Assembly: GCA_044892525.1 (NCBI GenBank)
Contig: CM097888.1
Coordinates: 1,674,001 to 1,738,000, forward strand
From: Schmidtea polychroa
Taxonomy: Eukaryota
DNA: 64,000 nt
Reading direction: 5' to 3'
Part shown: one piece after another, positions 35,570 through 64,000 of the stretch
Position numbering within the stretch: position 1 is the first letter of the stretch
Layout: each line of letters starts with the position of its first letter
Translations under genes and position numbers: made by a program
Notes under the pieces: model-generated
What the model saw: only the letters and a program-made list of their open reading frames with translations
The model's database searches: none
Told to the model about the DNA's origin: nothing

Positions 35570-36615
35570 ATTTTCATCAACTCAAATTTAACAAGGTTAG
35601 TCACACAAATCGAATTCTGAAATCAAACAAATGCATTTAATAAAAATTAAAATCATCGACATACACAACCGCCGTTCGCCCGCCCGCCCCGAAGGGGCTG
35701 GCGCCGTAGTTTGTAAATTTGGTTTATTTTGAATATTATTATTTGATACATAGTTTTATTATTTACAATATTCAAAGTATTAATAACAAAGGTAAAGAAA
35801 TAAATGTTTATAGTATGATACTCATTAATATACATTGAACATGCTTTACATTTGCGAACATTTGAAATTTGAAATTTTAAGGATTACCTTCGATAGATTA
35901 TATTGAATAATGGTTCATTAAAAAGGTCTCATTTTTTTTTTTGGATTTTTGTGAAAAGTTGTAGGTTAGGCTGAAAATTAATTAGTAAAAAAAAAATTGG
36001 CACTTTTTGTGTTGTCGAAATAATTGAAATAAATATTTTAAAAAAATGTAAAAAACTGAAACGTTAAATATCATTGCAAGTGTTGGCGTATGTGGGGGAA
36101 AGAAAATATATAGGCATGATTATCATACACATCAGGTGTCATTATTCTACTCAGATCATTCCCTCACGCACTCCAAATGATCATTCGCATATTCCCACAT
36201 ATGAGCCCGTGGTGATGTTCCACGTTGGTACTGCTCACACGGGTTGGAAAGAGTTAGCAGGTGAGCCCCTGCCTTAGGACTACTCCTAACCCTTTCTCGG
36301 TTCGGGTTCTACGGTGCCATAGAAGGTCTTACCCATTCTTTACGCATCATTCGGTCCGACCCTGGTCCAAAAGGTACGACATTTAAGTTTCTACTATATT
36401 TTCGTGATCCTTCTCTCATGCAATTCAACCGTAGCAAATCATACATACAATTTACACAATCAAAGAAAATCGAACAGTTATATTAGAACGGAACATCAAA
36501 TTACATTCAGCATTGTTTAAACAAATGCAAAACATTAAAGATTAGTCACGAGATAACGTCGCTTCTTCAAGTTCGTTCGTAATAGCAGGGGAATCGAGAC
36601 CCGAGAGAGAATTGG

Positions 36616-37380
36616 CTACGAGAATGCTTCTCCTTCTGCGAGCATCTCGTCGATGTCAACGGGCAACCGGCGATCTTCGAGGAATTTGATACTGCCGGCC
36701 GGAACTACCCGGAATACTTCCTTTGTAGGAATGGAATGGGTAACTGTAATTTCCTTGATAGTTGCTTTGGCCACAGATAACGATGCTTCGAGCGCGGCCA
36801 TGGCATTTCTACGCTTCTGATTTTTTTCAGAACGCGTCAGCCGCTTACGCTTTCGATGGGGAAATGTAGCTTCTGCTGGGGACTGAAGGAGGTGTGGCAC
36901 GCGTACTGGAGCCAAGATGGGGTCCGATGGACCGCCAGCCGTAGGTCGATCGCCCGAAAGAACTGGGGCGGGAATTGGCGGCATTTGTGGGCCATGCCCT
37001 TTACAGCTGGGTGTTGTTGAGGTTTCAGCTAATTTGTGGTGCATTGGGAACACGTTAGTCCCATCTTGTATCGGGTACTCGCGAACTCGCTTCGCTAGTT
37101 CTGATTCGGAATACACCTTGTGCAGTGCCTCTGATTGGGCCTTTATGGTTAGCCTCTGGCACCTGCTTTCTTCCAGGAGACTGTCACGGCAGTGCTCCAA
37201 ACGCAGAATCTTGCTCTTCTCCTCCTTCATTTGTGGTGGGGAGAACCACGTTCCCTCATAGAGGTCAATTCTCTTCTTCAATTCCCCGATGTACAAGTGG
37301 AGCTGTGCGATATCGGCATTTTTATCAGCACAGGAAAAGCAAGGTCTGAGGGTTTTCCCGGAACTGGTTGAGGTATTCAT
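36616..37380 (-). CDS. 254-aa LTR-encoded protein (CxxC, coiled coil, Pro-rich, basic RKRKR..KRR patch)
   Basis: ATG-initiated 765-nt ORF, same translation in both LTRs, sense to the element, preceded by TTTAG. Confidence 0.6.
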   Translation of the reverse strand: MNTSTSSGKTLRPCFSCADKNADIAQLHLYIGELKKRIDLYEGTWFSPPQMKEEKSKILRLEHCRDSLLEESRCQRLTIKAQSEALHKVYSESELAKRVREYPIQDGTNVFPMHHKLAETSTTPSCKGHGPQMPPIPAPVLSGDRPTAGGPSDPILAPVRVPHLLQSPAEATFPHRKRKRLTRSEKNQKRRNAMAALEASLSVAKATIKEITVTHSIPTKEVFRVVPAGSIKFLEDRRLPVDIDEMLAEGEAFS

Positions 37381-40300
37381 CTAAATCGTTAAGGAATTTT
37401 TATTAAAAATAGAAAAAAATTCACTGGTGTGTTATTCATATTTTCGGAAAACGAAATTTAAGATCTCCCCGACCAAGTTATCCGAGAGTGGCCTACCAAT
37501 CTACCCCGTCGGCAAACATTCACCTTCATGCAACCTCAAACATCTAAACTAACCCATGAAATCATTACTACTTTATGAGAAGAAAACGGGATTCATGAAA
37601 ACAATTCATTATGCTAGCTTTTAGGTTTACTTTACGGGTTTGACTATTTTTAACTACTGCATGACTGTTAATTCGTTACTATGAACGCTATTATCTTAAT
37701 TATCGTTGTTACATTTTAACAATTATATTTTACTCCTTTTGCTGCTACGTCATTAAATTCTACGCGTATTGTATGATGAGCGGGAAATCGGCAGTTACCG
37801 GGACACCCCGTCTTGTATGTAGACCCCTCGGGTTTGTACGAAAATCATAATACTCTCACTTAAATTGTTATCGTGGATTATAATTTAGTTATTTCAATTT
37901 AACGCCATAAACATCGTCCTAGTGACGCTTAAATCGGGCGCAGTTATGTGTTCATTTGCTTGTCTATCTATACCGTCAACTATCGACGGGTTCGTTACGA
38001 TGCATGTTGGTGCATTTAACTAGCGACTTGCACACTGACACAAAAAATTTCTCGTCGCATCGCCATGTTCTCTGACGCAATCCAGTGGTCTACTAGCAGA
38101 TACAAGTTTACGACTCTCTCCCTCTGATTAGGTAATGATGATATCCACATGTGCACTGTGACCTAATCTGAGTGTGATGCATGTGTACATGTGGGCGAGC
38201 GATTAATAGAGGTAGAGTTGTAGAGAGATGCTCTAGTTGAGACGGGTACTCAGTTGGTGTGTCCAAAACTCAAGAAATTCGATTGTGTGGGTGACTTGCG
38301 GATTCAGTAGATAAAAATTACTCTATTTTCTGGATTTTCGATATTTGGTCGATTCACGATAAGACCACTCAATACACTCGATCGACTGCCGCCTTCTAAA
38401 TCAACTCGTTCGATGACTTTATCAAATTATCAGCCGATTTTCCCCCTCGGAAACTTATCTGGCCATGGGCAACTAATGATTCTCCTATCGCTATTGATAT
38501 CTTCACTCGGACTCACGGCAAGTGATTTATTTCCTTATCAAAAAATTTGTTTACTTTCCCCTTTTAGACGAGCCGCTGTCAACGTCAAACCAAACTTTAT
38601 CAGATATTCGATGTCAAGCTAAAGTCTAAATTAGTAAATGAATGGGTTTACTCGCTAATGTCCCTGCAATGTACCTCTCGGGGTTCAATTTTTAAGTGCT
38701 TAGCGGATCTTCCAGTGAAAACTCTAACAATTCATCGCCCATCCCTACTCAGACATCTATCAATATTCGACGGAAAAGCAAATTTTCCTAACAACAACGA
38801 ACTACTGATCTCAATCCGAAAAATTGTCTCCGACTTTGGAAATTTACATTATTTATTCTGAAACTTCAGCGTGACTTCATAAAAGAAAACGAAAGATCCT
38901 CTATCAGATCGCGCTCGATGTGAGAAATTCTACTTCCAACAGTATTCCACCTGCGGAGTCTCCTCACCCCTCATGACCCACCCAAGAAGGCAATCATCTC
39001 TGCCGCCGTTCTTGCATCGTCGTGAGGGACCGTTTGACTCGTCTTTCACAAAATCAACATTTAATATACAATTTATGAATAATAAGATGAATGAATGAAT
39101 CAAATAGTAGCAAATGGATCAGTAAAAATAAATGGATCAATAAAGCTCACCCGGCGACCCTATCATTTGGACTCCAAGTATGATGTTATTCATTCCACAC
39201 AACCGCAGCCTCATCATAACCTTGGTAGATCTCTCACATGATAAATATCCTTCTCTGCAAATGTCACATTTTCATTTTCAGCATCTTCGGGATTTCTTAT
39301 GAAGGTCAACCTTCCCACTGTTGTGTTCTCTGCCGTGGTACATTTCCAACTCATCCACATCATACTGGGAGCTCTCAGATGGTACAGTCGCCGGCACCAT
39401 GAAGAAAAGGCCATTTGTATTTCAATAAATTTATTTTACGAAATGAGTTTTGTCTTTCATCATTAATAAATTAACTAATACATATAAATCAATCGGCCTA
39501 CCGATAGTTTCAAAAACTGGAACGAAATCGAGTTTAAACTGGTTTCAAATTAATTGAAGGTAAATTCTGAAAATCTCTCGAATTGGCGTTTGCGATTCTA
39601 GTCCTGAATTCGGTGAAATATCTGAAGTCTATGCTCTGTAATCGTGAAAAATTAAAAGTGGTTTTTAAGTTTTTCTAAAATTTACCTGTAATCGTGAAAA
39701 ATTAAAAGTGGTTGTCGTCTAATTTTTCACGTTACATATATAGTATTTTTCGTCCAATCAGGACGCTACCTGCTTGTATTTTTACTATTTATTATTATTT
39801 TTATGTTTTTATCATCGTATTTTAAATTTTTAATGACCTGACTTATCTCTTATTATTATTTTATTTATTTTCTTGTTTTTACTATTTTTCTCCTATTTTT
39901 CCTGTGGATTTATTGCTACTTTATGGTAATATAATTTCTTGTTTTAATTAGACTTAAAGATAGTTTTATTTTTTATTTATTTCTTAAATTTCTCTTTTAT
40001 TTGTTGTCACTTTTTTACTTATTTTATTCTATTTCATCTGCTGGGTCCTAAATCGCTTTATTTCTAAATCTCAAGGGGTTTATTGGATTTTATTTTAGTT
40101 TGTTTACTTATTCTTATTCTTTTATTGTTATTTTATTGTTCCTTCCTATTTACTAGTGAGATTTCTATGGTACTTTATATTTTTATCTTATTTCATTTAT
40201 TTTTCAAGGATTACTTTTCTATTCGCTCCAGTTTTCGAAACTCCACGTTTTAGCCCAACAAATCACTCCGGGGCCCGTTAAAATTGCGCCCCGCAATTCA

Positions 40301-40490
40301 CATAATATCATACGTTTAACTCATACCTTTTTCGGCATAACAACTAATTTCACGGTCAACATTCACACAAACATAAAATTAAAATAACTAAATAATACTT
40401 TAATTAAACAGATAAAAGGACAAATATAAGCAAGCAGTGGCCACTTTAGGTGACCGGATTTATACACACAAAGTTTATGAATAGTCGATG

Positions 40491-41126
40491 TCACATGATC
40501 TCAAGGTTCGGAATGTTATTACTGTCTTGGTTGGTTGAGTTCTGGGTCGGATGGCTGGTCGAAGTTGTTATCGTGGGGAGCTGGATTGTAACAGGCATTT
40601 GGTCGGGGGATAGATTTTGTTGCATTTGGTCGGGTGGGTTTGGTTGTTGAAAATGTACTGCTCGTTTATGTTTATTTTTCGATCGTAGGTTCTTTCTTTC
40701 GTGTTTTTCGGATAGTGACTGGTTTCTTCTCCATGTTCGATGAATATCATACGCTTTCCAGATGACTAGTGCGCAGATGATAAGGGTTTCACTGATGGTA
40801 GTATAGAGTAAGACTTGGCTTTCTTTTACTTCCTTCTTCATGATGATTTCCTTCAAGGATTGTTGGGTGGTTTGTTCTTGTAAGAGAATTTCGAGCTGTT
40901 CGATTTTTTGGGTTTGTAGGTGGAGTTGCATTTGAAGTTTTTTCCAGACGACTTTGTTCCAGCATTGTTTCGGGATGTTGTTGGAGAGCTTTCTCTCGCT
41001 TTTTAGTTTGGTTAAAGGGTTTTGCTGTTTCTCGGGATTCTCCCAGAATGTTGGGATTGGCTGCCACATGGGTCTCCCGTTTATCGCTATCATCATTATT
41101 GTCACCAAGGTTGCTCCGAACCACAT
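40491..41126 (-). CDS. 211-aa putative type I membrane protein
   Basis: N-terminal hydrophobic MWFGATLVTIMMIAI, coiled coil, TM-like TISETLIICALVIW, basic stop-transfer segment. Confidence 0.6.
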   Translation of the reverse strand: MWFGATLVTIMMIAINGRPMWQPIPTFWENPEKQQNPLTKLKSERKLSNNIPKQCWNKVVWKKLQMQLHLQTQKIEQLEILLQEQTTQQSLKEIIMKKEVKESQVLLYTTISETLIICALVIWKAYDIHRTWRRNQSLSEKHERKNLRSKNKHKRAVHFQQPNPPDQMQQNLSPDQMPVTIQLPTITTSTSHPTQNSTNQDSNNIPNLEIM

Positions 41127-41181: not shown

Positions 41182-41883
41182 TTATTGCCGGGTTTTCTTT
41201 TTACGGGTTTTCTCGGATGTTCTCATCACTCTCGTTTCTGCTTTTATTACTCGTTTTCTCAATTCGGGTAGTACTTTTAATTGTTTGTCTCTTTCGTCTA
41301 ACTGTTGCCTTAGGGTTATTATTTTTTCTTTTAGTGCTTTTATTTCTTGTGTTGCTCTTTCGAGGTTTCTATGGTTCATTATCTGTAGGAAATCATTTTC
41401 CCTTCCCCCGTCTTCTTCGTTGTCTATTTCCTGGTATTTGTTGTTCATTCGTCTCATTATCTCACATTCTTTCTGTTTTTGGTGTAGTTGGAGTTGTAAC
41501 TCTTTCAAGCTTTCTTGGTGTTTCCGTGCCTCGGTTTTCCAATAGTCACTAATCACTCCGTCGGCCTTTCGACTGGCCCTCTCCTGCCATAATTCTTCCG
41601 CGATCTTTTCCCAATTTCTCCCTCGCTTTCTTTGCTCGTGAAGCCATTCGTTTTCTTCCTCTACCTCTTTCTTTACTCCTTCTAACAAGATATATTCTCT
41701 TTTCAATACTTTAATCATTTTTCGATTATCTCTCCACCTTTCAACTAATCTTTCGTTTTCCTGTCTCTCTTCTTGTAATTCTTCCTTGATAGTTTTCTTC
41801 CTCTCCACTTCATCAACTTCAATTTCTCCCTCTTCTAATTCGATTATAGATGTTATGCTGGGTTGTCCGTTTTCGGTGTTCAT
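41182..41883 (-). CDS. 233-aa coiled-coil protein, unknown function
   Basis: ATG-initiated, E/K/R-rich with heptad pattern, same strand as pol. Confidence 0.7.
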   Translation of the reverse strand: MNTENGQPSITSIIELEEGEIEVDEVERKKTIKEELQEERQENERLVERWRDNRKMIKVLKREYILLEGVKKEVEEENEWLHEQRKRGRNWEKIAEELWQERASRKADGVISDYWKTEARKHQESLKELQLQLHQKQKECEIMRRMNNKYQEIDNEEDGGRENDFLQIMNHRNLERATQEIKALKEKIITLRQQLDERDKQLKVLPELRKRVIKAETRVMRTSEKTRKKKTRQ

Positions 41884-42061: not shown

Positions 42062-43099
42062 TTATACAAAGGTCTCTTCCTGGCCTACATATCCCTCATC
42101 GCTTTCTACTGACGTTTGTAATTGGAGTGCGATGGGATCAAATGGGATGTAGTACCGGGGAATCTGCGCTCTAAGTTCTTGCACTTCGTCTCTTAGTGCT
42201 CTTGACACGTTAAGTTCCTCGTCCAACAGGTATGTTAGATACCTGGTTTCATCGTCTCTTACCTCTATCTGTTTTTCTAGCTCTTCCGCTTTTTCGCCGC
42301 TTTCCCATTTCTTGATCTCTATCTCCAGATTTTTAAGATTTTCGTTATACATTTTTCTTTCGTTTTCTAACTTTTTGTTTTTCCCCGCCAGTACCATATT
42401 TCTCTGCTCCAGAGCTCCTTGGTATCCGTTGACATCTCGTTCTAGTTCTGCGACCTTATTTACCAGTTCCACGAGTCGTCCTGACTGTTGAAGTATCAGT
42501 TCTTCCATTGCGGCATTCTCGTGCTCCCTTATGGAGATTTTCATGGCTAGATGTCTTTCAAATTCCATGGCTTTGGTCTGCCATGTTTGGCTTCGGGCCG
42601 CAATCTTTCTGAGCCGTTTCAGTTCTTCTCTTATGACCAGATTTTCCTCCCATTTGCCTTGTTCGCTTTCGTATTCTAATCTCATAGGCAATTCTTTCAT
42701 TTCTTTTTTCATCTCTTTGTTCTGCCGCTTCCAGTTTCGGGCTTCTGCCAATAGGTGATTCATTTTCCTTCCTTCCTTTTGTTTTTCTGCTTCTCGTTTT
42801 GTGTTTTCGTCCGTCAATCGTTTCCGTGCTTCCTGCACTAACTGTTTTAAATAGTGGCTGTGTGCTTCTTGGCGAGTGTTTTCCAATGATGCCCACTTAG
42901 AGGCTCTTTTGCATGCTTCTGCTTCGGTTCTTAAATTGTTTATTAACCACTGATATTTGTTATTCTCGTATTCCCTGGCCTCTTCGAGATGGTTGTGGGT
43001 CTGGTTCGTCAATTGTAACATTACTTTGACCCATTTTCCCTTATGGATTTTATTGACTTTGGTTTCGTGGTTTGGGGCTTCAGTTCCTTCTTGTGTCAT
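42062..43099 (-). CDS. 345-aa coiled-coil protein, unknown function
   Basis: Long ATG-initiated, E/K/R-rich helical ORF. Confidence 0.75.
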   Translation of the reverse strand: MTQEGTEAPNHETKVNKIHKGKWVKVMLQLTNQTHNHLEEAREYENNKYQWLINNLRTEAEACKRASKWASLENTRQEAHSHYLKQLVQEARKRLTDENTKREAEKQKEGRKMNHLLAEARNWKRQNKEMKKEMKELPMRLEYESEQGKWEENLVIREELKRLRKIAARSQTWQTKAMEFERHLAMKISIREHENAAMEELILQQSGRLVELVNKVAELERDVNGYQGALEQRNMVLAGKNKKLENERKMYNENLKNLEIEIKKWESGEKAEELEKQIEVRDDETRYLTYLLDEELNVSRALRDEVQELRAQIPRYYIPFDPIALQLQTSVESDEGYVGQEETFV

Positions 43100-45155: not shown

Positions 45156-45323
45156 TCTTAATTTATATATACTTTTCAATCCTTATCTAATTTTATTTTT
45201 ATATTAATTATCCCCATCATTATATACTATTGATACCGCGCTTATATAAAAATATAGAATACTGTTATATAAATAAATATTTCCTACTTACTTTTTACAA
45301 TCTATATACAGTCATAATCCTTT

Positions 45324-54300: not shown

Positions 54301-57300
54301 AGGGAGTATCTTTCTCCTATTATCGAATTGTCACAGTCGTAAATAGTAAATCCCGCGGCTCCACTGGTGCAGAGCATCCATATCATCATGGTCATCATTA
54401 GTGAATTAATCGACGCTTTTCTGCTGGCTGGGTCTTTCAATGGCAATTCCCATTCTAGCTCATGTAGTAACTTCTTCAACCGAATTTGCATTGATCTCTC
54501 TTGCTCGTTTTTTCGTGGCGCTTGTATGAGTCTTTTCCACCCACCGGCGCGGATGATATGTGGTTCGATTGTATTTTCAATGATTGTGACGGTCATTTCT
54601 ACATGATTTGCGAATTGTTTGTTAGGTATTTTCCTTGCTGCTAATCCCATCAAATTGTACATTAGATACGTTAATACTACTAAATGATGTTCGTCGTCGT
54701 TTGCGTTTAAAGTTAATTGTTCAATTACTCTTCTTGTCTCTTCCCAATCGGTTTTAGTGGTTTTTGTCTTCTCTTTGATTAATTTCGGAATTATTCCGGA
54801 TATTGTATTCCATAGTTGTCTGGCGTCTACACTTGCTACTTTTCGTTGCCATAACCGTCGCAATTGTGGGTTCGTTATTATTAGCATATCTTTTACTAGC
54901 TCTCGTATCCATTTTTCGCCTCTTTCGATAGTTGGCTGGGCCTCTTTTAGATCCCACACTATTTTATCCAGTTTCTCTAATCTGACTTGTCCTTGTTCTT
55001 GTTTCAGTTGTTCTCTAGTTTTAAATTCCGGTTTTTCTCCTTGCTTCTTGGGTCTCCCTTTTGCCCGTTTTTCCATCATTGTTCCGGCTTCCCTTGTATT
55101 TTCATAATTCGGGTTTCTCTCGTTATCCGTTCTTGGCAATGAACTATCGTTATTTCTTAGCCATTCGTTCCATTCGTCTATTATTTTGTCCGTTTGACCT
55201 TCTGGTGTTGCTTTCGTTGGTCCTTTCTGTCGTTGGAATTGTTCGTCGGTTTCGGTTTCTGTTGTATTATCGATAATCTCCTCGATACTCAGCTTATTTG
55301 GCTGCTGATAGCTAGTTGACGGTTGGCTTGTTGTCCATATTTCGGCTCCTGTCGGCCATCTTACCAGAATTGGTGATCTTTCTCCAGCTCCTCCATCGCT
55401 GTCTTCCAATATAATTTCCTCGATTTCCTCGGTTTCATTCGTTTTACTTGCCACTTTGTTAGGGCTTGGTGTACTCAAGCTACCTTTCGTAGGTTTACTG
55501 GATTTGTTCTTCCTTTTAATCGGTTTTCCCAATGTTTCTGCCATTGTCAATACATTGATCTCCCCCAATCTCATGGGTGTTATTCCGACATCTGCATTAT
55601 CATCCAACGATTTTCCGAATAGTTGTAGGTGAAATGGAGTTTCGTATGCTAATTTCTTTTTTAACTCTCTGATCTTTGTTGTTGGATGTACTTCTGTATC
55701 CTCAATGCTTTTGTCGGGATACTTGACTCGGATACGATACCTTTCCTGGGTATCTTGTGCCCATTCTTGGTTTCTCCATTTCCTAATAATTTGTTCTAGC
55801 TGTTCTGGGTACCATTCGTTATATTGTCTGTATTCCTCAATCGCTTTCGCCATTTCTCTTAGATTGTGGATATTCTCTGATGTCTTTAGGATGATGTTAG
55901 CCAATGCTATTACTTGACGTTTTTGATTTTTTGTTCCCGTTGCTAAGATATCACCTAATTGTTTATATCTTTCCTTCTCTTCTCGTTCTCGAGCTTCCAT
56001 CGCTTCTTCGCTATCCATATCGGCATATTCGCGTTCTTTCTTTCTCATCGCATGAATATGTCTGGTTTCCGTTTCACTTTCTGATGTAACATCCGTTTCG
56101 CTTCCGTCGTCCGATGTCGATTCTATTTCGTCCTCTTCATATTTTGGAGGTTCATCTTCCTCTTCTTCTGATTCACTTTCTATCTCACCAATGTCTGTTT
56201 CCACGAAAATCCCTTTCCTGATTTTCCATTCTTTGTTTTCCGCATTCCACGTCCTTTCCCATGGGGTTCGTCTGCAGGATCTCACACTTAGTTTCTTTAT
56301 TTTTCCTTGAAGCTCTTTTTCTTTTAACCACTGTTGATGAATTTCAATTATCTCTACTGATTTTTGATATAGCGTTTTCATCCTGTCTCGTATTTCTTTC
56401 TGGTATGTTATATCTCTTGTTCGGAATTCGTCCATGGGCAATATTCTGATGATTTGATGATTATCCCACATTCCCATTTCGCTTAGCGAGGTGTCGTCTT
56501 CGGCCCGTAATATTATTTTATCGTACATCATGACTACGTCATCTATCATCCCGTCGCTACTCTCGCTTCGTACTTTTTCCGTTATCTCTTGGTTTATCTT
56601 GGTTACTAAGTCATCTACCGTACTCTGATTACTCATCTTTATTCGTCGTTTCTCCTCGTTTGGTAACCATATGGTTATTTCTAATTTCTGCGGTTGCGTT
56701 TCTTTCAACCTGCCATATTTGTGGATCAAATTTATGGTTCTCCAATCGCTCATCCTGAGCAATTCTGTATCTCGTAATCGGCTCATTAGCTCATGCATGT
56801 CTGGAGTTCGTCTTGCTATGAGTAAATCCCAGTTATCTTCGACTTGTTCTTGAATTTGTTTGATTAATTTATCTAGATTTCGTCGCAAGGTGCATTGTTT
56901 TATTTGTTCCAGCTTCAGCTTGATGCTAAAATCGTACTCGGCCTTGGCGTCTTTAGCCCATTCGTGAATATTTGCTGGTTGTTTCTCTTTATACAATTTC
57001 AATATTTGAGTTTCTCCTGGCCAGATCAATGCATCTATTAGGTGCATGTCTGGTTTGATTTGTTCTCCTTGATGTTGATACAGATATTCTTTCTTTCTCG
57101 AGCTGCCCAAATGTTCTCTTATCCAATCGAAAAGGTCGTCTGTGACTGCATTTTTTATCCATATTCTCTCGAGTCCTTTACTCGTTCCGATTTTTATTAC
57201 ATAGCGTGTTGTCTCCGCTTGTTTCATTTTTTCCATATACTTCTTTATTATCACTTTTTCCTCGTTTGGTATTAGGTCTTTTTCGTTTCTTTCTAGTTTC

Positions 57301-59759
57301 ATTATCTTTTGTATGAAGCGTCGGTATGGTATGATGTCAATGAATTCCTGGTTTCTTACCACCACTGGAAGTATTTCCTTTACTTGTTTTATCGCTTCTT
57401 CTCTTTCTTTTCTCAATTTCATTTCGATATTCTCGTCTTCGCTTTCGCTTGTCACGTCGCTTTCTCTTTCATCTTCATCTGCTCCGATCTTTTCTCTTAG
57501 TTGGTCGATATTCTCATTTAACTGTAACATTTCTCCACCAAGGCTACTCACATAATCCTCATCGTCATCTGTTGACAACACCTTCTTTGTTGTCCTCATC
57601 ATATTAATTCGTAAATTTCTCATTCTTGGTACTTTCTTTAACTTGTTGTTCTCGAGTATCGTTAGCTCCTCTGAGTCTAATTCTCGTATCATATTATGCT
57701 TTAGATGATTAATCTGTTTTTCATTTTCGTTATTTTCTGCTTCTGCTTCTGTTTTTGTTGGCTCATTTTCTCTTTCGATTTTATCTTTTATCTTTTTCCA
57801 AAATATTTTCTGAATTCTCTGATTTCCTTTTAGTGGTGTTGTTGAATTTTCCTTTTTTGCTGCTGTAATTGTTTCTTTCGGTTTCTCTGGTTCGCTCATA
57901 GGTACAACTCTTGGATTTTTACCGTAATTGTAACAATATTGCTCCTTTATCTCCTTTACCATCCTCATCATATTTATTCGTAGTGGTTGTTCTTGTCGCT
58001 GCTGAATTCGCTCTCTTTTTATCCTTTCTTCTTCAGCTTGTAGTCTTTGCCATTCTTGTGCATGTTGTTGCACTTCATAATTGTTAAGATTCTCGGTGCT
58101 TCTCATCATGCGTATATTCTGGGTTGGTTGTGGTACTTGCTCTTGTCTCGGTCTCATCATTTGTTGCATCATCTGCTTCATTTGTGAAATTTCTTGCATC
58201 ACATTCATTTGCTTTCCCTCACTAGGATTACTTTGTCGTTGCGGATTTGGTGCATAGTTATTATTTCGCTGTGGTGGTCGTTGCTGTTGGCTCCTTTCTC
58301 GACAGTCTCTTGAGATATGACCTAGTTGCCCGCAGTTAAAACATCCTCTTGATTGGCATATATTTTCCGTGTGTCCTCGTCGTCCACACCTATTGCAATT
58401 TGCGTTTCGGTAACAATCTCTATCCCAATGTCCTGGTTTACCGCATGTTCGGCATTGTTTGTTATCGTTCATATTTCGTCGATTATTAAAGTTGTTCCCA
58501 TTGTTCGAGTTGTTGCGTTCACTGTTATTCCCGTTTGATCGTCCTTGTGGTGGTTTGAAAATTTGATGTGCTCCTGGTATAAACTGATTCATCTTGGGTT
58601 CATGATTATTGTTATCCCCATTTTCCGTTTTCACCGTTGCTGTTGCGATTCTTCCCTCCTCTTGCATGACGTTCATTTGTGCTGGGAGGTGTAGTTCGCA
58701 TCTTGTGGCCCAATCTATGGCTTCTTCTAGTGTTTTACACATTTGACATCCCACCGAGGCCCTTACCTCTTCTCGGCGTAGTCCTTCTATGAAATAACCA
58801 ATTAAATTTTCCTCCGGCAAGTTTCCGTTCATGGCCTTCTTTGCCAATCTTCGCAATTCACTTGCGTATAACGTAATTGACTCGTTTGCTCTTTGTTTTC
58901 TACTTGCCAGTTCACCTAACGCTTGATTTATTGGTTTGCTGGCTCCGAATGTTTTTCTCAAAAATGTTTTGATGTTTTCCCAATTGTCTAATTTCGTATT
59001 TCTTTCTTTTGCTTCCAGATATACTTCGAGTGCGCTATCGCACAAAAACAGAGGCATTCGTTTACTAATTGCTTCGGGTGTCCATCCACACACATCGATA
59101 TAGACTTCAAAGTTGGTTATGAACGTTGCCAACTTGTTCGCATTCCCGTTGAATGGTTCGCCTCTAAATTTTTCCTTATACTCGTCAGTTTTTACCACAT
59201 TCATCTTAATTGGTTCTTGAAACTCTATTATTTCCTTTAAATTTTCCAGCGATGTAGCTAAGCTATGGACGGATAATTCTTCTGTTGACCCGGTTAGGTT
59301 GTTTGTTATATCGGATAGACTTTCTCTACTTCTAGATCGGCTGGGCGTATGTCCGGCTGTGGGGTTTTCTTGATCGTATATCGGTGTTTTGTGGGGTCTT
59401 TTTGCTCCTTGTGATATTCCTCTCTTCTGCCTAAATGATCGTCCTCTTTTGAGTTGATCTAATTCGTCTCCTGAAAATAATACGTCTCCTGGCTTACTTG
59501 AAGATCTAAGGTTGGGTTTATCCGTGATTTTCCTTTTACTCTTTTCTGTCTTTTCACGTGGGTTTTCTACGGTTAGCGTCTGCTGAATTGGTCGAGTTCG
59601 GTTTTGATATTGTCTTCCTTTGTGCGGGTTCTGAATTGCTTTTCCTGGGTTGTTTGTATATTCTCTGGATTCCTCTTGAGCTGGTTCTGAATTGACTTGG
59701 TTGGATGGATGTCTACAATGAAAATATGATATCGTGTTGCCTTTGCTTACACGAATCAA
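45324..59759 (-). CDS. 4,811-codon Gag-accessory-Env-Pol-ANK-membrane polyprotein
   Basis: Uninterrupted 14.4-kb frame; first in-frame ATG at 59204 (codon 186); domains listed separately. Confidence 0.95.
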   Translation of the reverse strand: MIRVSKGNTISYFHCRHPSNQVNSEPAQEESREYTNNPGKAIQNPHKGRQYQNRTRPIQQTLTVENPREKTEKSKRKITDKPNLRSSSKPGDVLFSGDELDQLKRGRSFRQKRGISQGAKRPHKTPIYDQENPTAGHTPSRSRSRESLSDITNNLTGSTEELSVHSLATSLENLKEIIEFQEPIKMNVVKTDEYKEKFRGEPFNGNANKLATFITNFEVYIDVCGWTPEAISKRMPLFLCDSALEVYLEAKERNTKLDNWENIKTFLRKTFGASKPINQALGELASRKQRANESITLYASELRRLAKKAMNGNLPEENLIGYFIEGLRREEVRASVGCQMCKTLEEAIDWATRCELHLPAQMNVMQEEGRIATATVKTENGDNNNHEPKMNQFIPGAHQIFKPPQGRSNGNNSERNNSNNGNNFNNRRNMNDNKQCRTCGKPGHWDRDCYRNANCNRCGRRGHTENICQSRGCFNCGQLGHISRDCRERSQQQRPPQRNNNYAPNPQRQSNPSEGKQMNVMQEISQMKQMMQQMMRPRQEQVPQPTQNIRMMRSTENLNNYEVQQHAQEWQRLQAEEERIKRERIQQRQEQPLRINMMRMVKEIKEQYCYNYGKNPRVVPMSEPEKPKETITAAKKENSTTPLKGNQRIQKIFWKKIKDKIERENEPTKTEAEAENNENEKQINHLKHNMIRELDSEELTILENNKLKKVPRMRNLRINMMRTTKKVLSTDDDEDYVSSLGGEMLQLNENIDQLREKIGADEDERESDVTSESEDENIEMKLRKEREEAIKQVKEILPVVVRNQEFIDIIPYRRFIQKIMKLERNEKDLIPNEEKVIIKKYMEKMKQAETTRYVIKIGTSKGLERIWIKNAVTDDLFDWIREHLGSSRKKEYLYQHQGEQIKPDMHLIDALIWPGETQILKLYKEKQPANIHEWAKDAKAEYDFSIKLKLEQIKQCTLRRNLDKLIKQIQEQVEDNWDLLIARRTPDMHELMSRLRDTELLRMSDWRTINLIHKYGRLKETQPQKLEITIWLPNEEKRRIKMSNQSTVDDLVTKINQEITEKVRSESSDGMIDDVVMMYDKIILRAEDDTSLSEMGMWDNHQIIRILPMDEFRTRDITYQKEIRDRMKTLYQKSVEIIEIHQQWLKEKELQGKIKKLSVRSCRRTPWERTWNAENKEWKIRKGIFVETDIGEIESESEEEEDEPPKYEEDEIESTSDDGSETDVTSESETETRHIHAMRKKEREYADMDSEEAMEAREREEKERYKQLGDILATGTKNQKRQVIALANIILKTSENIHNLREMAKAIEEYRQYNEWYPEQLEQIIRKWRNQEWAQDTQERYRIRVKYPDKSIEDTEVHPTTKIRELKKKLAYETPFHLQLFGKSLDDNADVGITPMRLGEINVLTMAETLGKPIKRKNKSSKPTKGSLSTPSPNKVASKTNETEEIEEIILEDSDGGAGERSPILVRWPTGAEIWTTSQPSTSYQQPNKLSIEEIIDNTTETETDEQFQRQKGPTKATPEGQTDKIIDEWNEWLRNNDSSLPRTDNERNPNYENTREAGTMMEKRAKGRPKKQGEKPEFKTREQLKQEQGQVRLEKLDKIVWDLKEAQPTIERGEKWIRELVKDMLIITNPQLRRLWQRKVASVDARQLWNTISGIIPKLIKEKTKTTKTDWEETRRVIEQLTLNANDDEHHLVVLTYLMYNLMGLAARKIPNKQFANHVEMTVTIIENTIEPHIIRAGGWKRLIQAPRKNEQERSMQIRLKKLLHELEWELPLKDPASRKASINSLMMTMMIWMLCTSGAAGFTIYDCDNSIIGERYSLRDIEECRQASPNKLDIVKKKVSYHVYQESDFIRTQARECVVSKKVLAYYCGQYSYSTLILPGLDKEIVPIQREDCKELFRTGAMRIRDGVTIHGQSGMIKTESIYVAGRVKSTDGSCNGGTYTIRGEVISGVVVIESYTVELKEYEAQFDANNYQMKTNPACRATENVCRTGISTIIYEANTQKCRLQLLKSALFNEVKGEIYENEDDDEENGNVRMRNGKPVPPSPKEKRLTTQKTPTALITDDPDIGMRFIREKETTKCDSIVYRTNYAGIYMSRQVIDRAVGKVATEDVKLYLYANNKMDFLFHRGQTTMQKVYYDLIQNDCSLNKEILKTKLAIAITHPDNTMPSLPLPDGHFGRMVGEVMYTYACTKTFARLPRKPTIPPGKCANELEISYKGRNRFVQPVTRIMNPIGFYPNTFNCSNAYGPLYEKPDGKWIMLPVKTEVQEPKKFGLIELATEQDFKPIDVSKAGMYSPEDLETARLNVLFPARRESILSNMVTITGGTNFQSGPNYELLLSPDHFQQATSNMMKAMWGRFLVFGQMMAGILGIILIIQIVRVILTQMLACFDIYKREKKVNWKLIVGFLPFLAKTMVLHGHSKDIHRIKRLIKILTKIKGTDEEVGRRFRKTMYDEATRTQLKKNKPKFLDRFRNRSNSSDSDDDDNGNDKYPYPSRNPNEKPIETAPYWEKEKTNTWIANGSYIPPDIVGQQTALTMTQNMYPQLPSQPGMNYMPTRRTKSVDQADDVRTIAVMSSPGGAAVTVMIQINGKETSAMIDTGANVSAIAINQIPSKCWKDIEQTTIHIIACSKETVDVVGRWWTTLRYQDNEIETYLAVIPKLSEPCIIGTDLMPELFKEVVIDLTTMCLKDKMGRICKMNAIIRCPEKIIVPAKSQMICQIKVDAGMEGEVIFEPSKSFEKRRELPLAREIITINEDGEIPINITNFEEEDKIIYENERLGRLTPMIDIELPKIINETTKADELWIIDSTLLTEKEKERLQQLLIEYKDIFAISDLDLGACDVTLHAIPLIDETPIALRPYKLAEKQKEIAEAEVQKMLDAQVIEPSCSPWQFPVVMVKKKDGTQRFCIDYRKLNAVTKRDTYPLPDINEMLLMLQGAAYFTSLDLKSGYWQIKVKEEDKEKTAFTLGRDLYQFRKMPFGLTNAPASFQRCMNFVTHGIKQCMVYIDDLLIYSATFKQHLEDIRNVFVRLRQWKLKLKPSKCDWAKEKVTFLGHIVSAKGKEPDPRNIEKIKTCPAPKTVTQVQEFLGLCGYYRKFIKNYAGIAKPIQELVKKDISFIWGAEQQKAFETLRDKLIEAPILVHPDFKKPFLLATDASGYAAGAILGQLDEEGKERVIGYYSRTFKKHEKNYSVTEREALAIIQAIKHFRYLLWGHEICITTDHQPLVWLGQHKEASSRLMRWAMQLQEYSPFIKFKAGRANANADCMSRFIFPDLVDHEMQRICLMVAEDLDFCQLRKDQQEDTELKQIIEYVKTGKAEVYEKDQKLKEHMDKQRHRYIIEKDWLLIMDGEKRLMCIPENRRKDLLTQYHDGRLGGHMSSKKTLARMKQKYFWPTLTEDVTEWVKNCITCATRKNTGTKWKAPLKPMPVPAEPMTMISMDVVGPLPESDRGNIYILVITDYLTKFPEAFAMADQKARTIAKILVEEICCRYGTPKQILTDQGTNFMSEIMSEVTNYFKIAKLRTSPYHPQTNGMTERFNGTLIQMLSNYVDRHQRDWDEYIKLCLMAYRMSIHASTKMSPFKLMYGRECNMPMDLEYQPPISQYMEIDDYVTKFKERMQEIWETAGLNIKFYQESYKELHDRKKNVKQHTFQTGDWVMIETPELIPGTTKKLQRNGKGPYEILFVGETNVRVRLVNNPFTRPIYVNVARCKPIPKTATSQPEGRTLTTRSQTYRINMLQQINEPTGNRLGLQPSEAEKIIKEVKVKMPGWAEDRLDFEILGGLLTMIENYANRERTHPLLRVVKSQWPILFTITDHYGDTPLHKLLKVGSNEQILETIEAFRDCNISTDQENNQGYTPLMIAANRDKAKDIIIALLETGSKITTQDHNQKNALHHAIEGKSTEAFIILVDLISYEDNREIGNMYDGLLTAIKEKLTTITGILIAWRNPIKNDYMVDINETFTKGENTLMREAMRGHHLFEIPNQLLQRGIKFSNHKDEQLIRKRITNFEKAISQFTDKVQVKFWDTVSVLHMMETMNNIRENYLSIIQVLTAEERINSSNKKKIKMKKVKARESEEQVDQPITDIATTSKPKIINSDQEIVVRKAKEVFFEEMQDLSDEAILAKITKTVHTYARDQTTNLDIGKIKTFIPLAFTLPTKDSRTPLQQAILAAKENRAITIIRILRDFGEESNAKNEQGETAMMYAAITNIHPKTLHILHQSGSRLDEISNEGNSTMDWATIQPNLEMIRFICKNATRTEVENICKNTSQFQWNTIRMNLEAMKLLLTWRIPQSNKYAININEFYENGENAMVKNTLTKGGTPKIIMIVLNREDLKFTQNLHEQKRIGKHRRIQLRELVKEWNRKRHVATGRKEFEPEAKLARNRVLTAYRRLLNEINVEDDILNDRGGDKDDKDDKDDDNNEKGRNGNKEKEKSEENNQENNDASRKKEENNPRNRRKQEEKTNSGKQRVCLLFTNKEMETNMMIMILVLTMVEMITAQGGMRTIKEAKETENKDNKEEELKQEKKKQVQEQQWDLKEEWDLKERCILGRCMSRAYQRLVLKNEDAEPITEVRIQEAYRNREGKRITKVKGKEVHLGKGGEVVITQLQPRKEHKVCIARLRPGEDCLQYVIQQQPPKEYTICIWRKDTARECRRYPGKRGKKRKIDDEKDEQGKRKKNSEKHQDNYVSEEEMEKIQKMAKEGMNEEIARIRGMMKGNGKDGNLKSTETISTITSKEKAEIISIKQMMWISGIIITGAFLIITGGTIKIIKDRRHHGELEMARIRNFQHRVKRPSNIKQEQWVEAWNAQRPPSSRI
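45468..46330 (-). other. Polyprotein C-terminal membrane module (signal-like segment, FN3-like motif, TM helix)
   Basis: MMIMILVLTMVEMITAQ; ITQLQPRKEHKVCI (resembles FN3 IxxLxPxxxYxVCV); TM MMWISGIIITGAFLIITGGTIKII, then basic tail. Confidence 0.5.
46790..48330 (-). other. Two ankyrin-repeat modules downstream of integrase
   Basis: DHYGDTPLHKLL, NNQGYTPLMIAA, DHNQKNALHHAI; then DSRTPLQQAI, NEQGETAMMYAA, NEGNSTMDWA. Confidence 0.85.
48630..49780 (-). other. Integrase (HHCC, DDE core, GPY/F); no chromodomain
   Basis: YHDGRLGGH..CITC; SMDVVGP; LTDQGTNF; HPQTNGMTERFNGTL; GPYEI. Confidence 0.95.
50000..50330 (-). other. RNase H
   Basis: LATDASG, YSVTEREALAI, TDHQPL, RWAMQL, NANADCMSR. Confidence 0.95.
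50560..51240 (-). other. Reverse transcriptase (Gypsy type)
   Basis: RFCIDYRKLN, SLDLKSGYWQI, MPFGLTNAPASFQR, YIDD (50742-50753). Confidence 0.97.
51670..52050 (-). other. Retroviral-type aspartic protease
   Basis: AMIDTGANVSAI (DTG at 51963-51971) and CIIGTDLM. Confidence 0.92.
52510..54398 (-). other. Chuvirus-like envelope glycoprotein (signal peptide, Cys-rich ectodomain, C-terminal TM)
   Basis: Signal MMTMMIWMLCTSGAAG; YDC..YSLRDIEEC; YQE..ARECVV..YYCGQYS; C-terminal WGRFLVFGQMMAGILGIILIIQIVRVI..WKLIVGFLP. These match, as recalled, Chuviridae G and the G carried by BEL/Pao elements. Confidence 0.75.
54528..54990 (-). other. Bcl-2-like helical segment
   Basis: IEPHIIRAGGWKRL resembles BH2 (WIxxxGGWxxF), preceded at suitable spacing by a degenerate BH1-like RVIEQLTLNANDDEHHLVVL. 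Confidence 0.45.
55548..57205 (-). other. Three ubiquitin/SUMO-like domains (about 56995-57205, 56440-56687, 55548-55743)
   Basis: For example YRIRVKYPDKSIEDTEVHPTTKIRELKKKL..LQLFGKSLDDNADV (TI.ELK, L.F.GK.L.D) and STVDDLVTKI..DDTSLSEMGM. Confidence 0.55.
58302..59204 (-). other. Gag capsid-like region plus three CCHC zinc knuckles
   Basis: FIEGLRREEVR, TLEEAIDWATRCE; CRTCGKPGHWDRDC, CNRCGRRGHTENIC, CFNCGQLGHISRDC (58302-58454). Confidence 0.93.
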
Positions 59760-60427
59760 TCATTCCTTTTTGCCACATTCAAGCACAGACACCGTTTTAG
59801 GGCCTCTGTTATACTTCTCTTCATTTCCCCTCATACGCTTCTTCGCGGAATATAATTTCCCATCAACCCATATTTTTCGTCGATTTTAAATTATCTATTT
59901 GGGGTGGTAACAATTATCTATATAGTCGTATAAATTATCTATAGTTAGCATTTATAATATCGATAGGTCGTTGTCAGTTACTGCTTATTACCCCCCATAT
60001 TTTCTTAATCCTTTTACGCGGTTCCGCTATTTTACTTAATCTTTCATCTCTGTTTCCCCTTATTTGGTTCTACTCTGTAACCAAAACAAAATTCGTTTAA
60101 CCGGTTTAAACCAAAAAAATTCTGTAGAACTTTGTCTACTTGTCTGGGATCCCTTTTTTAATTAATTAATCACCTTCCTCTTTTACTCATCACTTATTCT
60201 TTATTTTCATTATCTCTTTAATTCATTTTCCTTTTCCGTTTCTCTTTCCCACTGAAAAAAAAAATTTCATTATTACTTCCCACGAGCTCGTTTAATCCTT
60301 TCTAAATTCAAATATCATATTTCAAACTCACTTTGCTTCTAGCTAGCTTTAATATTCCATCTCACTAGTAATTTAAATGTTATCAACTTGTAGCTTGAAT
60401 GCTATCTCACTATTACTTTAGGCCTTT

Positions 60428-60782
60428 ACGACTGGCTGGCACTTTTCAACAGCTCAATCTTCTTCTCCTGACCGGTTGGACTATTCAACAACTCGATCTT
60501 ACGACTGGCTGGCACTATTCAACAGCTCAATCTTCTTCATCTCCGAACTGGCTGGACTTTTCACAGCTCAGTTTTAATTTTTCCTGACCGGCTGGATTTT
60601 TCAACAGCTCGGCCTTAATATCTCCGACTGGCTGGACTTTTCACAGCTCAGTTTTAATTTCTCCTGACCGGCTGGACTTTTCAACAGCTCGGCCTTAATA
60701 TCTCCGACTGGCTGGACTTTTCACAGCTCAGTTTTAATTTTTCCTGACCGGCTGGACTTTTCAACAGCTCGGCCTTAATATC
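60428..60782. repeat. Nine ~40-bp repeats in the element leader (alternating ~79-bp dimer)
   Basis: Core GACYGGCTGG(C)ACTWTTCA(A)CAGCTC. Confidence 0.9.
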
Positions 60783-61366
60783 TCTAAACTCTGCATGCTT
60801 CCGTTCCTTTTTGTCTTTATTCTATACTGTCATCTTCCTATTTTTACTTTTATTTGTCGACTTAATCTGTACCGCTTTGGAAGGTTTCCCCTTTCCCCCC
60901 TTGCTTAAAACGCAAAACGATCGCATTGATCCATTTCTGCATTGGTATGGTGATCAGCCATACCGCAGAAACTTTTCAATATTCGCGATGGTACCTCGCC
61001 TTACATCTCTTACTCGGGGTGATCGGTTATCCCCTCCCGAACGGTTTTTCAATTATCGTACCTCCCGAAGGTGGCTCGGTTTATTCCCCCTTTAATCTTA
61101 TGTTGGGACTAGCTCCACTTTATGTACTCGATTTAAATTTTAAAATACCCTTTCTTCATGGTGAAAATTATGATACAACAGATCAAATTATAGCTTCGCA
61201 AAATGAAATAAACACACAAAAATGATTTATTGATTATTCAGTCCATGCTACATATGATATATGATACCATTATTAAAATATTAATGAATCAAATCAAAAA
61301 AAATTAAAATATTTTAGTTTAATTGTTCAACCATCCAATTTCTCTCACCGAGCGACGATCACGTAC

Positions 61367-61846
61367 CTAACTGAAGTAGATTGTGTGCTTCTCTTTTATT
61401 ACACATGTGCACATAGAACACCGGATTAAACTGGCGGCGCATTCGTCACAATGGCTAAGGTGCCCACAAGGTAGAATCAGAATTTTGACAGGTCGCATCT
61501 TGCAAATGTTACAAGTTCTCAAGGCCGCTGCTTTCTCTACTATTGATGTTCGTATCCGCTGAGACAGAGTTTTGACTCGTTCGCGTATCCTCACATATTC
61601 GATGTTCAGCGCTGGGTCGTCGAGACGTTGCTGAAACCATTGGTAATGAATCGACAAGTCGGTATCGGTATTTGTTGATCCTAATCTGTCGGTTAGAAAG
61701 TTTTGTTTGGATATCAGCGGTGCGTTGTGGCTTTGTTGTTCTAGCAGTTCTATTTGTTTCAGTTTTTCCCTTAATGTTTTTATTGAATCATTTTCTATTT
61801 CGACGAACCGGCTTAGCTGTTGTAGATGTTGTCTAGCGTCTGACAT
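61367..61846 (-). CDS. 159-aa coiled coil + C-terminal IAP/MDM2-type RING, no BIR
   Basis: CNICKMRPVKILILPCGHLSHCDECAASLIRCSMCTCVIKEKHTIYFS resembles IAP RING CKICMD..IVFIPCGH..C..CA..L..CPICR..I...F.S. Confidence 0.85.
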   Translation of the reverse strand: MSDARQHLQQLSRFVEIENDSIKTLREKLKQIELLEQQSHNAPLISKQNFLTDRLGSTNTDTDLSIHYQWFQQRLDDPALNIEYVRIRERVKTLSQRIRTSIVEKAAALRTCNICKMRPVKILILPCGHLSHCDECAASLIRCSMCTCVIKEKHTIYFS

Positions 61847-62298: not shown

Positions 62299-62316
62299 AT
62301 CCCGGCTGAGCCCCCA
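62299..62316 (-). promoter_or_regulatory. Primer-binding site, tRNA-Pro-like
   Basis: Minus strand TGGGGGCTCAGCCGGGAT, 16/18 match to the vertebrate tRNA-Pro PBS TGGGGGCTCGTCCGGGAT; 7 nt from the LTR end. Confidence 0.8.
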
Positions 62317-62323
62317 AAAATCA

Positions 62324-64000
62324 TGTTGGCGTATGTGGGGGAAAGAAAATATATAGGCATGATTATCATACACATCAGGTGTCATTATTCTACTCAGATC
62401 ATTCCCTCACGCACTCCAAATGATCATTCGCATATTCCCACATATGAGCCCGTGGTGATGTTCCACGTTGGTACTGCTCACACGGGTTGGAAAGAGTTAG
62501 CAGGTGAGCCCCTGCCTTAGGACTACTCCTAACCCTTTCTCGGTTCGGGTTCTACGGTGCCATAGAAGGTCTTACCCATTCTTTACGCATCATTCGGTCC
62601 GACCCTGGTCCAAAAGGTACGACATTTAAGTTTCTACTATATTTTCGTGATCCTTCTCTCATGCAATTCAACCGTAGCAAATCATACATACAATTTACAC
62701 AATCAAAGAAAATCGAACAGTTATATTAGAACGGAACATCAAATTACATTCAGCATTGTTTAAACAAATGCAAAACATTAAAGATTAGTCACGAGATAAC
62801 GTCGCTTCTTCAAGTTCGTTCGTAATAGCAGGGGAATCGAGACCCGAGAGAGAATTGGCTACGAGAATGCTTCTCCTTCTGCGAGCATCTCGTCGATGTC
62901 AACGGGCAACCGGCGATCTTCGAGGAATTTGATACTGCCGGCCGGAACTACCCGGAATACTTCCTTTGTAGGAATGGAATGGGTAACTGTAATTTCCTTG
63001 ATAGTTGCTTTGGCCACAGATAACGATGCTTCGAGCGCGGCCATGGCATTTCTACGCTTCTGATTTTTTTCAGAACGCGTCAGCCGCTTACGCTTTCGAT
63101 GGGGAAATGTAGCTTCTGCTGGGGACTGAAGGAGGTGTGGCACGCGTACTGGAGCCAAGATGGGGTCCGATGGACCGCCAGCCGTAGGTCGATCGCCCGA
63201 AAGAACTGGGGCGGGAATTGGCGGCATTTGTGGGCCATGCCCTTTACAGCTGGGTGTTGTTGAGGTTTCAGCTAATTTGTGGTGCATTGGGAACACGTTA
63301 GTCCCATCTTGTATCGGGTACTCGCGAACTCGCTTCGCTAGTTCTGATTCGGAATACACCTTGTGCAGTGCCTCTGATTGGGCCTTTATGGTTAGCCTCT
63401 GGCACCTGCTTTCTTCCAGGAGACTGTCACGGCAGTGCTCCAAACGCAGAATCTTGCTCTTCTCCTCCTTCATTTGTGGTGGGGAGAACCACGTTCCCTC
63501 ATAGAGGTCAATTCTCTTCTTCAATTCCCCGATGTACAAGTGGAGCTGTGCGATATCGGCATTTTTATCAGCACAGGAAAAGCAAGGTCTGAGGGTTTTC
63601 CCGGAACTGGTTGAGGTATTCATCTAAATCGTTAAGGAATTTTTATTAAAAATAGAAAAAAATTCACTGGTGTGTTATTCATATTTTCGGAAAACGAAAT
63701 TTAAGATCTCCCCGACCAAGTTATCCGAGAGTGGCCTACCAATCTACCCCGTCGGCAAACATTCACCTTCATGCAACCTCAAACATCTAAACTAACCCAT
63801 GAAATCATTACTACTTTATGAGAAGAAAACGGGATTCATGAAAACAATTCATTATGCTAGCTTTTAGGTTTACTTTACGGGTTTGACTATTTTTAACTAC
63901 TGCATGACTGTTAATTCGTTACTATGAACGCTATTATCTTAATTATCGTTGTTACATTTTAACAATTATATTTTACTCCTTTTGCTGCTACGTCATTAAA
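62324..64000 (-). repeat. 5' LTR (truncated by window end)
   Basis: Matches 36081-37757; ends ...CGCCAACA on the minus strand next to the PBS. Confidence 0.95.
62859..63623 (-). CDS. Second copy of the 254-aa LTR ORF
   Basis: Same translation as 36616-37380. Confidence 0.6.
   Translation of the reverse strand: MNTSTSSGKTLRPCFSCADKNADIAQLHLYIGELKKRIDLYEGTWFSPPQMKEEKSKILRLEHCRDSLLEESRCQRLTIKAQSEALHKVYSESELAKRVREYPIQDGTNVFPMHHKLAETSTTPSCKGHGPQMPPIPAPVLSGDRPTAGGPSDPILAPVRVPHLLQSPAEATFPHRKRKRLTRSEKNQKRRNAMAALEASLSVAKATIKEITVTHSIPTKEVFRVVPAGSIKFLEDRRLPVDIDEMLAEGEAFS

Follow-up and report, generated by a model that had tools for sequence, protein, structure and literature searches.

The 64,000-nucleotide stretch of contig CM097888.1 analysed here (the window, in whose numbering all positions are given) ends in a giant retroelement that is read from the minus strand, and the question raised by this locus is whether such an element represents a kind not yet described. 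An earlier note, made from the sequence, had presented it as a giant enveloped Gypsy-type element whose combination of domains and genes was known from no description, with the fallback that it might be a Burro relative with different cargo. The evidence favors the fallback: the region is very probably one intact, very young Burro-type giant env-carrying Ty3/Gypsy (Metaviridae-like) long terminal repeat (LTR) retroelement. The claim of an undescribed combination fails because a published family, Burro/GYPSM1, has this architecture with most of the cargo (PMC6431247), and an already described family was what the earlier note itself had named as decisive against the claim. The Burro reading draws on the domain order, three CCHC knuckles, the placement and fold of Env, the cargo, the non-random packing of open reading frames (ORFs) and a shared A-rich composition.

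LTRs, polyprotein and envelope

The element is bounded by a direct repeat, 36081-37757 and 62324-64000, whose copies lie 26,243 bp apart from start to start, as reported before, and show 0 mismatches over 1,677 bp (100% identity). The first copy represents as much of the 3′ LTR as could be verified, the second is the 5′ LTR, and both are on the minus strand; the repeat is truncated by the window end. The visible outer LTR end reads TG on the plus strand, corresponding to ...CA on the element strand. The window shows neither the other LTR end nor the inner one, and no polypurine tract or target-site duplication can be made out in it. Because the last ORF ends at 40491, the LTR can extend to no more than about 4.4 kb (and measures at least 1,677 bp), which sets the size of the whole element at 27.9-30.7 kb, close to the 28-32 kb first proposed. 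The identity of the two LTRs implies a very recent insertion. Of the primer-binding site announced in the earlier note, position and form are borne out, in that an 18-mer starting with TGG (62299-62316, minus strand) lies 7 nt inside the 5′ LTR; a tRNA match was not obtained, the window containing no tRNA. At the opposite end, the non-coding stretch at 37758-40490 (minus strand, no ORF of at least 80 aa) must contain what remains of the 3′ LTR, as well as the polypurine tract; it includes an A-rich tract (39700-40220) and then GC-richer sequence, and purine runs are present. No stop and no frameshift (0 of each) interrupts any element gene. The interior is without N runs and, apart from a tandem array of 40/80-nt units in the leader that separates the RING ORF from the polyprotein (60426-60786), without internal repeats. 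The parts required for the cycle of an LTR retroelement are all present and intact. As a separate observation, a sequence of some 27 nt is present in two copies, about 50 nt apart, at 39640-39715 (minus strand), in non-coding sequence past the last ORF and after the A-rich tract of about 500 nt.

A single uninterrupted frame, 59759 to 45324 on the minus strand, accounts for 4,811 codons from stop to stop (14.4 kb), in agreement with the earlier count. Its first ATG is codon 186 (59204), from which a protein of 4,626 aa would be read and from which the N-termini of relatives align. The preceding 185 codons (59205-59759) extend the polyprotein frame upstream without an ATG; in the other two frames of this stretch a stop occurs every 12-13 codons or so, and the probability that it is open by chance is about 2e-7. 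Because the 185 codons are open against chance, they may encode an N-terminal extension reached by splicing or from a non-AUG start. GTAAGC and TTTTCATTGTAG are found near the start of this open stretch, on the same strand.

The pol domains of the polyprotein follow the Ty3/Gypsy order. Gag is represented by a capsid-like domain at aa 236-329 (58773-59054; Pfam Retrotrans_gag, E 1e-10) and by three CCHC zinc knuckles at aa 436-486 (58302-58454), which lie at residues 436, 455 and 473 and were identified by pattern scan and Pfam zf-CCHC. Pol consists of an aspartic protease (PR) at aa 2583-2674 (51738-52013; Pfam RVP, E 2e-7), a reverse transcriptase (RT) at aa 2896-3054 (50598-51074; RVT_1, E 6e-36), an RNase H (RH) at aa 3117-3246 (50022-50411; RT_RNaseH, E 5e-39, and RT_RNaseH_2, E 9e-37) and an integrase (IN) with an H2C2 zinc domain and a catalytic core at aa 3354-3544 (49128-49700; Integrase_H2C2, E 2e-20, and rve, E 4.5e-12). 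The order PR-RT-RH-IN with Gag and CCHC knuckles upstream, together with Gypsy-type polyproteins as the best named pol matches, supports the Gypsy-type assignment. Pol is followed by an ankyrin-repeat region at aa 3833-4252 (47004-48263; Pfam Ank_2, E 2.5e-19 on the piece) and by a C-terminal tail of about 560 aa (aa 4253-4811; 45327-47003) with two hydrophobic segments and no known domain.

An orphan region of about 1,300 aa separates the CCHC knuckles from Env. Its first part includes a lineage-specific region (aa 632-1179; 56223-57866) that has two relatives among 1.84 billion representatives. Further on, a ubiquitin-like domain (Ubl) occupies about aa 1343-1400 (55560-55733; Pfam ubiquitin, E 0.018); a profile of two sequences, this element and the relative P0049, retrieves ubiquitin, SUMO-1 and NEDD8 at single-domain E values of 1e-4 to 1e-3. 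About 330 aa after the Ubl, a stretch at about aa 1677-1741 (54537-54731) is suggestive of Bcl-2 (Pfam E 0.16), and in a profile search Bcl-xL makes up 50 of the 55 weak PDB matches, the best at E 0.05. A single-sequence AF2 prediction of aa 1330-1785 yielded no usable fold (mean pLDDT 37.6), and PDB sequence searches with aa 490-1300, aa 1300-1790, Env and the C-terminal tail returned nothing usable.

Env lies between gag and pol in the same frame as both (aa 1784-2416; 52512-54410), and its family match is strong: PF24664 is found at E 7e-72 for the whole protein, in two stretches across about aa 1786-2393. A signal-like hydrophobic stretch (aa 1784-1799) precedes the ectodomain, and a strong transmembrane (TM) segment (aa 2358-2392) and then a second hydrophobic stretch follow it. 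No R-x-K/R-R motif occurs in Env. When aligned with nine relatives (32-43% identity), 14 cysteines are invariant. The AF2 model (mean pLDDT 64.7, core 85-90) is beta-rich with a long central helix (335-382). Foldseek connects this model to herpesvirus gB (E 6e-14, probability 1.0, about 660 columns, with a TM-score of only 0.23) and, far better, to the glycoprotein of Tacheng Tick Virus 4 (E 1.4e-37). The next structural matches are to chu-like viruses of thrips, dermapterans and crustaceans, and the TM-scores to chuviruses and chu-like viruses are 0.35-0.38. The modelled Env is thus a class III fold, nearest to chuvirus glycoproteins, and the chuvirus-like Env of the earlier note is upheld both by the PF24664 match and by the Foldseek E of 1e-37 to chuvirus glycoproteins. 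When the Env piece was used by itself, a word-index protein search returned no match.

Accessory genes and the TRAF module

Seven accessory ORFs are carried on the element strand, one of them within the LTR, and every one claimed in the earlier note is present. Upstream of the polyprotein, an ORF of 159 aa (61367-61846) combines a helical N-terminal part with a C-terminal IAP-type RING (Pfam zf-C3HC4_3, E 3e-8); its PDB matches are the RINGs of cIAP1 and XIAP (E 1e-9), and it is without a BIR domain. Downstream of pol, the first ORF encodes 119 aa from its ATG, or 127 from a TTG, and is E/Q-rich and helical-looking (44796-45179; no family match passed the threshold). After it comes a full-length TRAF of 462 aa (43318-44706) composed of a RING, TRAF zinc fingers, a coiled coil and a MATH domain (Pfam MATH, E 2.5e-25). 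Its MATH domain matches TRAF3 and TRAF2 in the PDB at E 3e-28, and its RING with zinc fingers matches TRAF6 at E 1e-14. Next come a coiled-coil-like protein of 345 aa, rich in E, L, K and R and with no Pfam or PDB match (42062-43099), another of 233 aa that is E/K/R-rich (41182-41883, by composition), and a protein of 211 aa with a hydrophobic signal-like N-terminus and one TM segment at aa 105-123 (40491-41126). All of these are on the minus strand, as is the seventh, an ORF of 254 aa that lies within the 3′ LTR copy at 36616-37380 and recurs as the same ORF in the 5′ LTR copy at 62859-63623, with no Pfam or PDB match. The RING, TRAF, membrane and LTR labels given earlier hold, whereas "coiled-coil" for the 127-, 345- and 233-aa ORFs denotes only a composition rich in E, K, R, L and Q. 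As to the cargo named in the earlier note, TRAF, IAP-type RING, Ubl and ankyrin repeats are supported by Pfam, PDB or profile matches, and the Bcl-2-like domain survives as a weak resemblance.

The packing of these ORFs exceeds what shuffled sequence produces. Between 40491 and 45179, five ORFs in the sense direction reach 119 aa or more (0.01 expected from shuffles), and the block is 88% coding with an A content of 43%, the same as in the polyprotein. The LTR ORF is longer than the ORFs in 1,000 of 1,000 shuffles, and the RING ORF is longer than those in 99.6% of them. For all seven accessory ORFs, homologues are missing from the related loci L001-L010.

The history of the TRAF gene can be approached through the orphan region. 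A HMMER scan with aa 590-1789 against 1.84 billion representatives recovered two fragments only, P0101 and P0102. The first is collinear with aa 632-1179 (30-33% identity), continues into an in-frame MATH domain and then resumes with aa 1266-1327; the second has a counterpart of aa 1130-1196 (52% identity) joined directly to TRAF zinc fingers. At the Burro1-like MATH site the present element has about 87 aa instead of roughly 260. In a protein search the TRAF ORF found matches at 23-29% identity only; compared with the modules of P0101 and P0102 it shows 36% identity and scores 107 bits with each, whereas the cellular TRAFs found do not score above 65 and 89 bits. The modules of the two fragments are closer to it than those cellular TRAFs, and the simplest reading is a single ancestral capture of TRAF, the position of which later changed between in-frame and free-standing. 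The TRAF module would then have the same origin as the MATH/TRAF that lies in frame in a Burro1-like polyprotein, and occupy a different position here. The possibility that the accessory block is host DNA caught between two solo LTRs was rejected, because its composition and strand are those of the element and its TRAF is nearest to element-borne modules.

A short motif precedes most of the accessory genes. T(A/T)TAG, that is TTTAG or TATAG, lies no more than 14 nt before six of the seven accessory ATGs (6/8 ORF starts); it precedes only 10 of the 613 sense-strand ATGs of the element, and six of those ten are accessory starts. TTTAG is located 2 nt before the ATG of the RING ORF and directly abuts that of the LTR ORF. 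The nominal P of 5e-10 is overstated, because the pattern was chosen after the sequences had been inspected. The gaps between the ORFs downstream of pol measure 55-218 nt, and flatworms use spliced-leader (SL) trans-splicing and operons with a spacing of about 100 nt. Motifs and gaps of this kind are compatible either with spliced subgenomic RNAs or with SL trans-splicing of a polycistron, and the accessory genes probably depend on spliced RNAs for their expression. The acceptor-like signals suggest subgenomic RNAs as in complex retroviruses.

Relatives, Burro and competing readings

Burro elements occur in S. mediterranea and other Dugesiidae. Burro/GYPSM1 of S. mediterranea exceeds 30 kb according to a 2019 review (Arkhipova & Yushenova 2019, PMC6431247, summarising Jurka 2007 and Grohme et al. 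2018). The same review gives an internal region of up to 25 kb and an ORF1 of 4,873 aa in S. mediterranea, about 4.8-5.1 thousand codons overall (PMC6431247). Its listed parts are Gag, three CCHC knuckles, RING/AIR1, Smc-like, MATH_TRAF_C, Ubi2/SUMO, BCL2, env, dUTPase, BIR and ankyrin, and env is placed in frame between gag and pol with matches to mononegavirus glycoproteins (PMC6431247). The published map also shows tandem repeats and accessory ORFs, and extra ORFs can alternatively be polyprotein subdomains (PMC6431247). BURRO1 has tissue-specific expression, has been described as active and of high abundance, and is controlled by PIWI. Planarian genomes are difficult to assemble because of Burro elements, and an A/T content of more than 70% is given for Schmidtea. 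In the host part of the window the A+T content is 62-78%, mostly above 68%.

The present element shares with Burro its size of about 30 kb, one giant ORF1, Gag with three CCHC knuckles, the order Ubl, Bcl-2-like (weak here), in-frame Env and PR-RT-RH-IN, cargo of ankyrin, RING and TRAF/MATH type, tandem repeats and extra ORFs. The knuckle number agrees with S. mediterranea, whereas the D. tigrina element has two. They differ in the MATH/TRAF module, which here makes up a complete gene of its own downstream of pol, is in frame in Burro1 and forms an upstream ORF in the Dugesia tigrina element; the review allows for an in-frame as well as a separate module. The frame is 4,811 codons, or 4,626 aa, against 4,873 aa in Burro, and the BIR and dUTPase of Burro were not detected here, while an IAP-type RING is present.

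More distant relatives were recovered from metagenomes. The closest pol relatives are 42-46% identical, and none exceeds about 46% in a set of 5.8 billion proteins. Nine of the relatives are metagenome polyproteins of 2.7-4.1 thousand residues, all with PF24664 placed between gag and pol. The Gag of this element aligns to six of the nine, so that Gag, Env and Pol form one protein there; in at least one case, P0047, Gag is a separate upstream ORF. Some relatives have ankyrin repeats or else one or two further ORFs downstream, P0070 carries PF00692 (dUTPase), and the related contigs span only about 12-17 kb. One 16.5-kb contig (L005, 1-16509) holds a polyprotein of 4,029 aa with a PF24664 Env that aligns to this Gag, followed by two downstream ORFs; about 20 near-identical versions of it exist across ENA and Logan assemblies, making it a widespread smaller relative. 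Two further contigs of sample ERZ25039515 with related polyproteins (L003, 1-5800, and L004, 17000-24600) also contain bacterial-type genes, ABC transporter and MacB, luciferase-like and Mnh, and look chimeric. A Gypsy-type pol that is 41% identical, on a contig labelled as human skin metagenome (L006, 3410-5383), is presumably stray invertebrate DNA.

Three other known systems resemble the element in part. Ty3/gypsy "errantiviruses" with the order GAG-ENV-POL and an HSV/gB-type Env have been surveyed in Platyhelminthes, Nematoda and Bryozoa and are polyphyletic (PMC13524379). They share with the present element a Gypsy-type pol, a class III gB-like Env between gag and pol, the cysteine framework and multiple young copies; the available portion of the survey describes no RING, TRAF, Ubl, Bcl-2-like, ankyrin or multi-ORF cargo, unlike what is seen here (PMC13524379). 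The mosquito element Anakin likewise bears a Jingchuvirales-type (chuvirus) glycoprotein, but on a BEL/Pao rather than a Gypsy backbone and without giant cargo (PMC7642597). Complex retroviruses and long foamy-like endogenous retroviruses of fish have multiple accessory genes after pol and an LTR ORF; they belong to the Retroviridae, have env after pol and of another fold class, and reach at most about 17 kb, according to the 2019 review (PMC6431247).

Several points weigh against assigning the element to Burro. The likeness is one of architecture as described in the literature. No copy of at least 50% identity was found in any collection searched (metagenome relatives reach 41-50% at best and IMG/VR yielded none), an exact look-up of nine window proteins in a collection of 15 billion proteins found none present, and P0101 and P0102, the sole fragments found in databases for the mid-region, share only 30-52% identity with it. 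There is no in-frame MATH as in Burro1. No BIR domain was matched by Pfam in any polyprotein piece or accessory ORF, no dUTPase was found between PR and RT at Pfam E values up to 5, and the Bcl-2 assignment, suggestive only, falls below threshold. The window covers neither the outer end of the 5′ LTR nor the target-site duplication. The definition of the acceptor motif was post hoc, most relatives lack the motif, and the processing, splicing and host-pathway effects considered below are proposals read from the sequence.

Some of the same points would suit a giant Gypsy lineage with env that is distinct from Burro, comes from another flatworm group or phylum and gathered similar host-derived cargo independently. 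Such a lineage could explain why the mid-region shows only 30-52% identity to P0101 and P0102, why TRAF is placed differently and why BIR and dUTPase were not detected, and GAG-ENV-POL elements are in any case polyphyletic across Nematoda, Bryozoa and Platyhelminthes (PMC13524379). However, the polyprotein is collinear with P0101 both before and after the MATH site, and common descent links the TRAF modules. In addition, the order Gag, three CCHC, Ubl, Bcl-2-like, Env, PR, RT, RH, IN, ANK is that of the published Burro map (PMC6431247), the lengths of ORF1 are nearly equal (4,811 codons against 4,873 aa published), and the flank is AT-rich as in Schmidtea. Independent origin is improbable. Least credible of all is an assembly artefact or composite, in which LTRs of different insertions or a collapsed repeat would surround a smaller element and unrelated host genes (TRAF, RING): giant repeats are difficult to assemble, the LTRs are suspiciously perfect and two N runs occur elsewhere in the window, but the element has no N run and no internal repeat besides the leader array, its strand, A-richness and coding density are uniform over 40.5-59.8 kb, its TRAF ORF is nearest to element-borne TRAF modules and not to cellular TRAFs, and downstream accessory ORFs occur both in relatives and in the published Burro map (PMC6431247).

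Surroundings, proposed life cycle and significance

The remainder of the window contains no Burro fragment. A long (TAA)n microsatellite (35116-35237) is found some 850 bp away from the element's insertion site. A partial tandem of a Penelope-like retroelement is found at 31204-35112 (minus strand), with an RT ORF of 626 aa (32388-34268), GIY-YIG ORFs at 31698-32252 and 34765-35112, and direct repeats of at least 300 nt that are 3,067 bp apart. An ORF at 6369-6734 (plus strand) that adjoins the N run 5749-6109 matches a proteasome alpha subunit (Pfam Proteasome, E 8e-13) and is probably an exon of a host gene. Two ORFs outside the element, a RING-finger ORF of 385 aa (15391-16548) and an ankyrin ORF of 205 aa (20714-21331), both on the minus strand, have no resemblance to the RING, TRAF or ANK of the element at E 1e-3. 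Weak matches to DUF4371 (24783-25244, minus strand, E 0.002) and to an N-terminal DNA-binding fragment of topoisomerase I (29640-29948, minus strand, E 0.002) may be remnants of genes or transposons.

As a Burro-type element, the copy would replicate like an ordinary LTR retroelement: genomic RNA would be transcribed from the LTR, reverse transcription primed by a tRNA, and the product inserted by the integrase. Owing to its signal-like and TM segments, Env would have its ectodomain in the lumen of the endoplasmic reticulum, with Gag and Pol remaining cytosolic, and host signal peptidase together with the element's protease may separate the parts of the polyprotein. The accessory genes might be reached by cis-splicing as in complex retroviruses, or a polycistron might be resolved by SL trans-splicing, as happens in flatworm operons. 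As for the cargo, the products of TRAF, IAP-RING, Ubl and Bcl-2-like type may act on, or interfere with, ubiquitin, TRAF and cell-death signalling of the host; interference of Burro cargo with host signalling has already been proposed in the 2019 review (PMC6431247).

For the family, an intact copy with identical LTRs provides a clean reference for annotation. To the published descriptions it adds a class III chuvirus-like Env, as modelled, flanked by signal-like and TM segments, the apparent mobility of the TRAF module, and acceptor-like signals. These additions are incremental, refining a known family and not establishing a new kind of element. A more specific proposal is tentative and rather doubtful: that the copy belongs to an uncatalogued Burro lineage, either a distinct subfamily or that of a planarian other than S. 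mediterranea, in which TRAF is an independent full-length gene and six accessory genes have acceptors of their own. If this were true, it would mean complex-retrovirus-like or operon-like expression, not yet described for Gypsy-type elements, in a copy with identical LTRs.

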